A stretch of DNA of 64,000 nucleotides, taken from contig NW_005434646.1 in assembly GCF_000315625.1 (NCBI RefSeq), positions 397,626 through 461,625 on the forward strand, in the 5' to 3' direction. Below the pieces are notes generated by a model that worked only from the letters and a program-made list of their open reading frames with translations, did no database searches and was not told where the DNA came from. The translations under genes and the position numbers were made by a program. Position 1 is the stretch's first letter; each line of letters starts with the position of its first letter. Positions 8,142-15,496 of the stretch are shown here, in pieces. The stretch is from Guillardia theta CCMP2712 (taxonomy: Eukaryota > Protista > Cryptophyta).

Positions 8142-11100
8142 ATGCGGTCGTCGTGGACGGGTTTGGCCTTTTTGGCTCTTCTTGGAGTTGGATTCGTGCT
8201 TGCAAGCACTGCCCAAGTACAGACAATGTCTCATACTGAGAGATGGAACGACCTGTCTGCCAAGTTTCGTAATTATCACCAGGTGAAGATGCTGGGCAAA
8301 CGACATCATGGGGAGTGACTGTCTGTGTGTTTCAGGATCAGTTCAACATCTTCCTGCACATGATAACTACTCCTCTTGGAGGTAAATTGTTGATTGCTTG
8401 GATTCTACACTGAAGTTAGCTCTCCTCCAGTTCTCAGTGTCTTGTCACTTGTCAACAAGGTGACAGGAACCAGCTTTCTCGCAAAGATCTTGGCCCTTGC
8501 GTATTGTGTGTCCATCATGGACAAGCTTCCAATGCACATTCTTGCCTTGACCACCTTGGTGTCAACTGGAATCGCCTTGGGCTCAACCCTGTCGTCTGGC
8601 CTTGGCTATCTGACCCACATGGTCATGTTCATCGTTGGATACTTCGGACAAGATCTGGCTCATTTTGCCACGGGCGAGAAGGTTGCTCTGCTCTTGAGAC
8701 ACGTTGCACGGTCGATTGACTGACACCACAAGCAGACCTTCCAGAGCAGCTACCAGCAGGACTCCAACTTCTTGGAGCTTCTCGCTGAGCACACCTACTA
8801 CCTCCTTCCTCTCGTGTTCGAGAGCACCATGCCTCCTCAGACTGCATGGTGACCGAGTGAGCCTGGTGTGACGACTTCTGACATGCTTGATAGGACTGGT
8901 GGTGAGGCCAAGTTCGAGCAGATCGTGCACACCCTCCCGTGCTTGGTGGCTTTTGTCGTTTACTTCTTGAGCACCTCCGGCGCTCTGCTCTTCCCCTGGC
9001 AGTTCCAGAAGTCGAGGGTGCTGATCGTCAAGCTCAAGGATGCTCAGGACTTGAAGGTTTCATTGTGGATGACTTACCTCGGCTGTACTGACTTTGCACA
9101 AGGACCTCGCTGCCATCCGCTCGTGGGCCATTTCCAAGGGTCCTTCCACCTCAACCTCTACCCACTGGTGGTACCAGGTGATGTCCATCTGCCGGTTTTT
9201 TGTCTTGCTGAAGAAATGCCAGGCTCCCAAGCCCGATACTCCCCCTGAGCAGTGCTTGGAGAAGGCCCCCAAGGATGCATTCTACAGGATTGCCAACGTG
9301 CCAAACGAGAATTGTTTCGCCTGCGTTGACTTTTCGTATTCTTAGTGCCCTACCATCACGAACTTGTACAAGAACCACTTCGGATCCAACTGGAAGGTTC
9401 TACTCCGTCATTCTGCATATGCAGCCTCATGACGAGACGGGCAGGTTGAGGTTTTGGATGGGATGAACGAGGTGTACGTGTCCGCCCCTCATACCGTCAA
9501 GAATACTTCTGATGAGGTTCCGTGGGCTGAAGCTCTAAAGGCAAGGGAGTCACTTGCACCGTCAGGTCTTCTACACGAGACATATCGATGGACCATACTA
9601 CTACATCCCCTTCAGGTAACACCTCAAACTCCACTGCTTCTTCTTCTCACCTCCTTGCTTCGCAGCTCCTGCTTCCGTATGATCATCGGTCTTGATGCCA
9701 ATGAGGAGATCACCACCAAGGTTCTTCCATCCTCATGAAGATGTTTCGGTTGACTTGAAGCTCGCAGTTTCCTCTTGTTCCAACCGAGCTCGCTGCTCAG
9801 AACGGAGATGTTCTTGCCTTCGACTTCCATAGAGAGGTCGAGGAGATGTCGCAGCACGGATGGGGGTTGACATATTTCCATCAGGTGCACTACATCGAAA
9901 AGAACTATGGTGTTGTCAACAAGGACTTCCGTATCGTGCTCAAGGTTCTGAGCGGCTGAGGGACGAGTCAGAAGAAGCTGAGACAACCCTGCCAGGTCCA
10001 TCACGTCATCTATCCCTCGTGGGCCTGGCCTTTCGGAAAGCTCATGGGAATCTTGTCCACCCGCTACAACAAGTTGTTCCGCTCCCTCTTCCTCTACACC
10101 ATCAACCCCAAGGTTGGGAGGAATCTGCAGCCACGGGCTGAAGGACTGAGATAGCTTCAGGGACTGTTCAACAGGTTTGCGGCATGGAATGTTGTCTTCT
10201 GGACGAAGGTGGCGGATCATTTCGGGGTGTCTTGGCTGAAACTTGGGGCAGGTTGTGCATCAGATCGAAGAGAAGGTCGGCTACTGGTGAGGAAGAGGGA
10301 TAGGGGAAGGTGCGCGTCTGACTTGCTTGCAGCAACATCGGATACATCGCAGCCCTCGCTGTCGTCTCCTTTTTCACCACCTACAAGGTGTTCCTGGTGG
10401 GCACAAGGTAGGAAGGAGGATCAAGGTGGAGGCAAATCCCTTCTCACCGTGAGGCCAGCTTCATCCACTACCTGCGCTACATCAACACCTACTACCATCG
10501 TGAGGGCGTCGCCTACGGAGTCTTCAAGGTCTCCTCTGACTGGTTGCCCTGTGGGCCAGTGACGTGGGATGGTGGTGCAGAGAGACGTCTTCCTCTTCAA
10601 GGCTCTCTCGATCTCCCAGCTCGTCTTGTTGTATGCGTCAGCCGTCACCAACAACTTCACCGACCTCTCGCTCGCCTTGAAGTGAGCCTCTCCTCCTGTT
10701 GTCTGCTCTCTCGCTCACATGCCTCCTCCTCTCCAGGACTAGCCCCATCGACTACGCCATGATCTTCGGAGGCTATGCTCTCTCCATCTACACCACCTTC
10801 CAGGTTGCTCCTCTCCTCTATTCTGGTAGCTTCGCCACTGACTTGCCCCTCAGCTCGGTGTTGATGGAACTTACTTCGGGATTGAGCTCGGCTTCGTCAA
10901 GGTAGAGGAGGAGAAGAGGATGCGGGAGGAGCTGACACGTCGGCAGGCCTCCAAGCACTACGTGCAGAAGTTCCCCTACGGCGTGATCCCTCACCCCATG
11001 ATCCTCTCCCAGTGCGTCGCCATGCTCGGTTTCATGCGTGCGGAGGCCTTCAGGTCCAGCTGGCCCTACCTCGTGCCCGCGCACGTGTGCCTGTACATGG

Positions 11101-11174
11101 TGCACATGCTGCAGGAGCACTTTGACATCTACAAGAACAAGGCGAGCAAGTCTGTTTCTTTGAAGAGCGCGTGA
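8142..11174 (+). CDS. Multi-exon membrane lipid-modifying fusion protein: signal peptide + Mpo1/DUF962-like domain + HxD...H (Fe/2OG- or cupin-like) domain + PEMT-type phospholipid methyltransferase domain
   Basis: Exons joined by eye give MRSSWTGLAFLALLGVGFVLA (signal), NYHQDQFNIFLHMITTPLG and GQDLAHFATGEK (DUF962-like His motifs), FYTRHIDGPYYYIPF...AFDFHREVHYIE, and LGVDGTYFGIELGFVK...QKFPYGVIPHPMILSQ (PEMT-like). Confidence 0.72.

Positions 11175-11300: not shown

Positions 11301-15496
<4,196 letters not shown>

Follow-up and report, generated by a model that had tools for sequence, protein, structure and literature searches.

We have found a strong candidate for the enzyme that converts the betaine lipid diacylglyceryl trimethylhomoserine (DGTS) into diacylglyceryl hydroxymethyltrimethyl-beta-alanine (DGTA). 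The candidate is encoded at positions 8142 to 11174, on the forward strand, of a stretch of 64,000 nucleotides from the cryptophyte Guillardia theta CCMP2712 (contig NW_005434646.1, positions 397,626 to 461,625), which we refer to as the window. Judged from its sequence, this region is one intact nuclear gene for one polypeptide, in which an N-terminal membrane domain related to the Mpo1 dioxygenases, a middle domain with the predicted fold of Fe(II)/2-oxoglutarate (2OG) oxygenases, and a C-terminal domain resembling PEMT methyltransferases follow one another. The family to which it belongs appears to be uncharacterised but widespread, with the three-part fusion conserved from bacteria to algae. 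What is new about this family is the evidence from gene context, as its members lie beside btaA and btaB or beside BTA1. A role in the metabolism of betaine-lipid head groups is in our view highly probable, and that the family forms DGTA, most likely from DGTS, we hold to be an evenly balanced proposition. Taken as a whole, the best explanation, which we favor mildly, is that a three-part endomembrane protein of about 669 residues modifies the head group made by BtaA and BtaB, likely turning DGTS into DGTA.

Among membrane lipids without phosphorus, DGTA is a major one in brown algae, cryptophytes, chrysophytes, diplonemids, and some haptophytes and diatoms, and ocean lipidomics makes wide use of it as a marker. 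The assumed route to it is a decarboxylation of DGTS followed by recarboxylation, with the enzyme and the mechanism described as unknown in 2023 (PMC10685587), and in the literature up to November 2026 we found no report naming a DGTA enzyme. With a concrete gene family, and with bacterial operons that lend themselves to direct expression, the question of the DGTA enzyme is now testable. If our reading is correct, the family would supply a genetic marker that tells DGTS from DGTA producers, which is often impossible by mass spectra alone; it would bring to light chemistry of a new type on lipid head groups; and the automatic annotation of its genes as PEMT would be corrected.

Linkage to the genes of DGTS synthesis

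A motif scan of one genome per species gave 35 bacterial loci with a homolog, in Planctomycetota, Myxococcota, cyanobacterial metagenome-assembled genomes (MAGs), a BD1-7 gammaproteobacterium, and others. Both btaA and btaB lay directly beside the homolog at 20 of the 31 loci tabulated from this set, with further support from a few loci that are partial or frameshifted. Three gene arrangements occurred, with the homolog following btaA-btaB, preceding the pair, or divergently oriented. Mapped on a FastTree tree of the family, the loci with this adjacency spread over five or more deep bacterial clades, among them Pirellulales, BD1-7 gammaproteobacteria, two myxobacterial groups, and a Calothrix MAG. 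Because NCBIfam holds no BtaA or BtaB model, the two genes were called by the Pfam family DUF3419 and by position, DUF3419 and its methyltransferase being taken as the BtaA/BtaB pair; Pfam confirmed DUF3419 in the distant cases of adjacency. In Rhodopirellula, the apparent operon runs from an LpxH-like metallophosphoesterase through DUF3419 and a class I methyltransferase to the homolog, which comes last, and the phosphoesterase presumably belongs to the type that acts in lipid remodelling as the phospholipase PlcP.

Of five bacterial genomes without adjacency, four carried DUF3419 elsewhere, versus none of 14 control genomes. At homolog loci without btaAB the neighbours were unrelated and did not recur, with the exception of one gene found at two planctomycete loci: directly upstream, on the same strand, stands a gene for an Rce1-like membrane protein of the CAAX-protease family (L024, 5231-5884; L028, 9343-9903).

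Gene clusters are uncommon in eukaryotes, yet the same linkage was observed in diplonemids. In Diplonema papillatum, a gene for a fusion of DUF3419 and a methyltransferase (BTA1) lies 3.5 kb downstream of the homolog on the same strand, and a second contig has the pair in the same arrangement, 1.3 kb apart; we take this contig to be diplonemid, from the close sequence alignment of its homolog to the relative P0223. No lipid genes were seen in the neighbourhoods of the homologs of Diacronema, Gorgonomyces, Amorphochlora, and a pelagophyte. G. theta itself has an intron-split DUF3419 gene (BtaA/BTA1-like; C123:97057-98185, L041-L043), on another contig than the gene in the window.

The family is thus linked, in a conserved manner, to the DGTS synthesis genes btaA and btaB in bacteria and BTA1 in diplonemids. 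A preliminary description of the window, made from its letters alone, had placed the protein in either betaine-lipid or sphingolipid tailoring; the neighbourhoods bear out the betaine-lipid half of that guess, and nothing pointed to sphingolipids. The family protein has no homology to BtaA/BtaB of bacteria or to BTA1 of algae and fungi. What it has in common with them is the context of the pathway, the neighbouring position of the genes in diplonemids and many bacteria, and the known or probable use of S-adenosylmethionine (SAM). BtaA and BtaB build DGTS from diacylglycerol, and the family protein would act afterwards.

Distribution of the family

Named homologs came from cryptophytes; from the chrysophytes Ochromonas, Paraphysomonas, and Chromulina; from the brown algae Pylaiella and Nemacystus; from Pavlovales (Diacronema), Chrysochromulina, bolidophytes, a pelagophyte, and the diatom Leptocylindrus; and from the chlorarachniophyte Amorphochlora, diplonemids, Oxyrrhis, the choanoflagellate Choanoeca, Corallochytrium, and one chytrid. 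Cryptophytes contain DGTA, and Chlamydomonas, Nannochloropsis, Rhodobacter, and the rhizobia are not known to have a betaine lipid other than DGTS. No named homolog came from any of these four DGTS-only groups, which, as far as named matches show, possess BtaA/BtaB without the family. DGTA is documented in Ochromonas and brown algae (PMC9892843) and in Pavlova/Diacronema (PMC8379373), and Diplonema papillatum contains mainly DGTA and MGTA (PMC8611851). All named hosts with known betaine lipids thus belong to lineages reported to make DGTA, a statement that leaves aside Chrysochromulina, Paraphysomonas, the bolidophytes, the pelagophyte, Amorphochlora, Oxyrrhis, Choanoeca, Corallochytrium, and the chytrid.

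Synthesis of a third betaine lipid, diacylglyceryl carboxyhydroxymethylcholine (DGCC), was considered and rejected as the function of the family. Thalassiosira and Emiliania, both DGCC producers, gave no named homolog, and cryptophytes, brown algae, and Ochromonas, which are not known to contain DGCC, were likewise counted against it.

Structure of the gene

The gene model consists of 22 exons with 669 codons plus a stop codon. Exons 1 to 6 lie at 8142-8282, 8336-8381, 8431-8681, 8736-8848, 8894-9056, and 9103-9177; exons 7 to 12 at 9223-9297, 9346-9396, 9445-9516, 9566-9615, 9666-9720, and 9768-9836; exons 13 to 18 at 9885-9944, 9996-10112, 10161-10208, 10252-10286, 10333-10407, and 10459-10528; and exons 19 to 22 at 10581-10681, 10737-10803, 10854-10901, and 10947-11174, all on the forward strand, as are the features given below. 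Each of the 21 introns begins with GT and ends with AG, and the exon chain contains no internal stop codon. When the 22 exon peptides were aligned singly to the closest full-length homolog (P0004, an uninterrupted protein of 670 residues, whose numbering we use throughout), they fell contiguously, end to start, on residues 6 to 667 with 64% identity, a fit that by sequence comparison is far beyond chance. Two introns, 9837-9884 and 10902-10946, are in frame, and the residues that they would encode are missing from homologs; the second was called an intron because its 15 residues are absent from P0004. The gene retains 87 of the 88 positions conserved in the family, and the remaining one, S502, is a codon split across the junction of exons 17 and 18. 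It is single-copy in the G. theta assembly (87.1 Mb, 669 contigs).

That the whole is one fused polypeptide, as the preliminary description had proposed after manual splicing, agrees with related sequences, in which the same architecture occupies one open reading frame: complete single frames are present in the transcriptomes (MMETSP) of Rhodomonas, Cryptomonas curvata, and Hemiselmis tepida, and the bacterial genes are free of introns. An apparent fusion could in principle be an artefact of splicing, with two or three adjacent genes transcribed separately. Such an artefact is scarcely credible in view of these single frames and of the way in which consecutive exons join up on uninterrupted homologs without a residue missing between them, every gap between them being an intron of 43 to 55 nt.

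The motifs named in the preliminary description were all recovered where it had placed them. YHQDQFNIFLH spans the junction of exons 1 and 2 (8274-8282 and 8336-8359), QDLAHFATGEK lies at 8649-8681, RHIDGP exactly at 9578-9595, REVHYI across the junction of exons 12 and 13 (9831-9836 and 9885-9896), TYFGIELG at 10869-10892, and FPYGVIPHPMI at 10971-11003.

With the unspliced frame 10854-11171 as query, an exhaustive HMMER search brought up 197 cluster representatives of the family, many of which have 570 to 710 residues and match at their very C terminus. Exon-by-exon scans gave only PEMT in Pfam (10854-11171, E 0.024, 15.5 bits) and nothing in NCBIfam, and a piece of 59 residues from the middle of the protein had no match in the protein atlas. 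A six-frame Pfam search of the genome for Mpo1-like and PEMT domains missed the locus because its exons are too short. Single exons being too short for family models, the domain results below come from full-length homologs.

The N-terminal Mpo1-like domain

The protein begins with a hydrophobic segment (8142-8222, from the translation of exon 1), which had been described as a signal peptide. The hydrophobic stretch itself is visible and has an equivalent in the cryptophyte homologs, being absent from bacterial and many other homologs; it may instead be a signal anchor. By its sequence, the stretch ahead of the conserved domain would be too short for a plastid transit peptide.

The membrane domain that follows (8235-8848, exons 1 to 4) had been likened to Mpo1, a proposal that profile comparison supports: hhalign matched the N-terminal family profile to five bona fide bacterial DUF962 proteins with 93.2% probability (E 3e-7) and put the H..N...H and GY.GQ..H motifs of the two in register. 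Pfam found its Mpo1-like family, PF06127, in 30 of the 78 aligned relatives at E<=0.01 (best 4.8e-6), with scores of 16 to 23 bits on full-length homologs and 19.3 bits on P0004, compared with a gathering score of 24 bits; the relative P0190 has a precomputed PF06127 match, and the single exons of the window gene gave none. Residues H44 (8277), H53 (8357), H138 (8661), E143 (8676), and H163 (8790) are conserved in the family and are all kept in the window gene. These data indicate that the domain is a divergent homolog of the Mpo1/DUF962 Fe(II) dioxygenases. It has the H..N...H and G.(Q/H)..H...E motifs in common with PF06127 and with yeast Mpo1 (YGL010W), an Fe(II)-dependent dioxygenase of 2-hydroxy fatty acids, and, by analogy, the O2-dependent oxidative decarboxylation carried out by Mpo1 would hold for it as well. 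Unlike Mpo1, it is fused to two further domains, and the genomic partners of the family are betaine-lipid genes and not sphingolipid genes.

This homology, together with one fragment that JGI named YGL010W-like, could mean that the protein is an Mpo1-type enzyme of sphingolipid or 2-hydroxy-fatty-acid alpha-oxidation to which tailoring domains have been added. We think this very improbable: the homology is distant and falls short of the Pfam cut-off, the neighbourhoods of homologs that were inspected showed no sphingolipid genes, and ordinary stand-alone DUF962 genes are present in the same bacterial genomes.

An extra transmembrane helix and linker (8894-8996) connect the first two domains. 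In the AlphaFold2 model of P0004, this helix covers residues 185 to 212 at a lower predicted local distance difference test (pLDDT) score of 51 to 64, and it is missing from several eukaryotic homologs and from the bacterial ones, where the alignment has a gap.

The middle oxygenase-like domain

The soluble middle domain (8997-10016, exons 5 to 14) had been suspected of being an oxygenase from its HxD...H pattern, and its predicted structure agrees with this. AlphaFold2, run on P0004 with an alignment of 78 sequences, gave a model with a mean pLDDT of 88.4 and a predicted TM-score (pTM) of 0.75; folded alone (P0004 222-450), the domain reached a pLDDT of 91.7 and a pTM of 0.89. Foldseek gave the domain model 345 PDB hits at E<=1e-3, with probability 1.00, and the best 50 of these all have the Fe/2OG-oxygenase fold, nearly all being annotated as 2OG oxygenases. 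An independent search with VIA-align gave Z scores of 12.3 for ColD, 11.9 for AviO1, and 11.8 for vCPH, its best 50 matches again all having this fold. At the level of sequence, Pfam has no family covering the domain in the full-length homologs and the 78 relatives, and a profile of 69 sequences met no PDB chain at E<=10.

H338, D340, and H392 are invariant in all 78 relatives, as are R406 and K410. The triad corresponds to window positions 9581, 9587, and 9888 (HxD at 9581-9589, distal His at 9888-9890), and its order relative to the predicted strands fits the canonical HxD...H layout. R406 (9930) and K410 (9942) come 14 and 18 residues past the distal His, where the last core strand begins. 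Fe/2OG oxygenases usually bind 2OG at this point, and in the model the two residues agree in location with the basic residue that would be expected to bind it. An aromatic THWW region lies at about 9160-9171. The model thus clearly points to a double-stranded beta-helix of the Fe(II)/2OG-oxygenase type with an HxD...H triad. Known Fe(II)/2OG dioxygenases (PHD2, vCPH, ColD, AviO1, PtlH, MysH) have the same fold at Z scores of 11 to 12 over 160 to 180 residues, with the HxD ahead of the core strands and the distal His opening a late strand, as here. They differ in that their TM-scores against the middle domain are only about 0.5 and that they have no sequence-level match to it in Pfam or the PDB, and, unlike them, the middle domain sits between two membrane domains. 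Two long helices in the AlphaFold2 model (P0004 418-473; 10017-10332) link it to the C-terminal bundle.

The C-terminal PEMT-like domain

The C-terminal membrane domain (10333-11174, exons 17 to 22) carries TYFGIELG, PHPM (10989-11000), and QE (11112-11117). Its likeness to PEMT, noted in the preliminary description, was found again in 74 of the 78 relatives, which match Pfam PEMT (PF04191) at E<=0.01 (best 3e-10). Full-length homologs scored 19 to 31 bits against a gathering score of 25, several relatives reaching 25 to 31 and P0004 22.5. The invariant residues G583, E592, H613-P-M, H643, H650, Q653, and E654 are all kept in the window gene. Among them, G583, E592, Q653, and E654 occupy positions comparable to those of the SAM-binding motifs of PEMT, with Gln as the first acidic residue, and the conserved C-terminal motifs may be these SAM-binding ones (the G-rich motif and the C-terminal acidic pair). 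The domain, a bundle of four to five helices with the G-rich TYFGxELG, FPY..xPHPM, and a C-terminal QE-x-F-D, has the layout of PEMT, which with Opi3 and plant PLMT makes up the closest known enzymes, the membrane-bound SAM-dependent phospholipid N-methyltransferases. Unlike these enzymes, the domain invariably follows the oxygenase-like domain in a fusion, has marginal Pfam scores, and shows Gln where PEMT has the leading Glu of its "EE" motif. The family with its 197 representatives is distinct from the canonical PEMTs, which the G. theta genome also has.

Two further PEMT matches lie elsewhere in the genome, at C32:545688-545990 (45.5 bits) and C20:270227-270439 (33.4 bits), both exceeding the Pfam cut-off; these are the likelier ordinary phospholipid methyltransferases.

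As had been predicted, the databases label relatives only as PEMT, ICMT-family, or methyltransferase. The UniRef label phosphatidyl-N-methylethanolamine N-methyltransferase, and the fact that PEMT is the strongest family match, would suit a protein that is essentially a phospholipid N-methyltransferase, converting phosphatidylethanolamine to phosphatidylcholine, with accessory N-terminal domains. We consider such an enzyme very improbable. The PEMT scores are marginal, at 15 to 31 bits versus a cut-off of 25; better matches exist in the same genome, on C32 and C20; the search with the C terminus returned only the 197 relatives, the full-length ones listed matching C-terminally; and the two other domains keep their invariant metal-binding residues. 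Moreover, the bacterial genes stand in btaAB operons and not in phospholipid operons, and because of this gene context the methylated lipid is argued to be one other than phosphatidylethanolamine.

Proposed mechanism and its weighing

We tentatively propose, at somewhat less than an even chance, that the family protein is the DGTS-to-DGTA enzyme and works by a rearrangement dependent on O2, Fe(II), and SAM, in which the original carboxyl carbon leaves as CO2 through the Mpo1-like domain and the beta-alanine-betaine skeleton is built up again by the other two. The family would then have spread between bacteria and many lineages of eukaryotic plankton, and giant viruses would have captured part of it. 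In this scenario, the middle domain would be cytosolic, between the two membrane parts of an endomembrane protein. There, the 2OG-oxygenase domain would activate a C-H bond in the head group, trimethyl-homoserine, whose trimethylammonium could be held by the conserved aromatic THWW region. The Mpo1-like domain would then remove the original carboxyl carbon by O2-dependent oxidative decarboxylation, and the PEMT-like domain would supply a SAM-derived methyl group, either to re-methylate the nitrogen after the rearrangement or as a carbon that is later oxidised. The order of these steps and the intermediates are speculative. The set of domains nevertheless fits a carboxyl-losing conversion, since oxidative decarboxylation of the Mpo1 type would remove the original carboxyl; more oxidation, and perhaps a methyl group from SAM, would be required besides. 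The mechanism also fits the decarboxylation and recarboxylation route assumed in the literature for DGTS to DGTA.

Several points weigh against this reading. To our knowledge, the proposed chemistry has no citable precedent. The closest homolog, P0004, misses the gathering scores of both PF06127 and PEMT, Gln takes the place of the leading Glu in the "EE" motif of PEMT, and the structures were predicted for P0004, 64% identical, and not for the window protein. The statement that the hosts belong to DGTA lineages leaves out all bacterial hosts, the choanoflagellate, Corallochytrium, the chytrid, and Oxyrrhis. Finally, two organisms reported to contain DGTA did not yield the gene: word-index searches gave no named homolog from Phaeodactylum tricornutum, in which DGTA is the main extraplastidial betaine lipid (PMC9892843), and Chloracidobacterium (PMC12816986) was not among the 35 bacterial loci of the motif scan. 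These gaps could reflect a second route to DGTA, divergent genes that were missed, DGTS that was mis-assigned, or an incorrect assignment of the family to DGTA. DGTS and DGTA are isomers that share fragment ions.

The linkage to btaA/btaB and BTA1 applies equally to a protein that acts in the betaine-lipid pathway without making DGTA, for example, by hydroxylating, demethylating, degrading, or remodelling DGTS or its precursor, diacylglyceryl-homoserine, or by making an undescribed betaine lipid. A role of this kind is favored by the two reported DGTA producers that gave no homolog in the searches above, and DGTA has not been reported from the bacterial hosts. In addition, the 2OG oxygenases known to act on compounds with a trimethylammonium group, gamma-butyrobetaine hydroxylase among them, do no more than hydroxylate. 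We nonetheless judge such a role unlikely, if to be taken seriously, as the named hosts with known betaine lipids all come from DGTA lineages, none being known as a DGTS-only organism, and as no other widespread DGTS derivative with a matching distribution is known. Furthermore, the three catalytic-looking domains have been kept together from bacteria to algae, and this joint conservation suggests a multi-step conversion.

Giant-virus forms and other relatives

A short form of the family, of about 390 to 440 residues, consists only of the oxygenase-like domain and the helices that follow it, and lacks the Mpo1-like and PEMT-like catalytic parts. It occurs in 42 contigs of giant-virus type from GVMAG and IMG/VR, up to 330 kb long (L044-L085; for example, L045, 6001-7248), and in one UniRef entry named "viral metagenome." The linker helices corresponding to 10017-10332 are kept together with the oxygenase-like domain in these short forms. 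Within 6 kb of them, neither btaA or btaB nor genes for the missing domains were found.

The DGTS-to-DGTA conversion has been described as accompanied by deacylation and reacylation. One relative, P0355 (864 residues), carries extra alpha/beta-hydrolase domains of the lysophospholipase type (PF00561, PF12146). Another, on a contig of a Magnetospirillaceae MAG (L035, 10001-11683), has no btaAB nearby and groups within the eukaryotic side of the tree, where its neighbour, with a support of 96, is the sequence from the chytrid. Its placement may reflect either a gene acquired from a eukaryote or an error in binning the contig.

Two repeats lie downstream of the gene in the window. A (GGACGA)x20 microsatellite at 11388-11509 (99% match), about 215 nt 3' of the stop codon, would encode an acidic run of Asp and Glu if translated on the forward strand, and a perfect tandem repeat of 30 nt, in 4.4 copies, at 12523-12654 lies inside long open frames on both strands.

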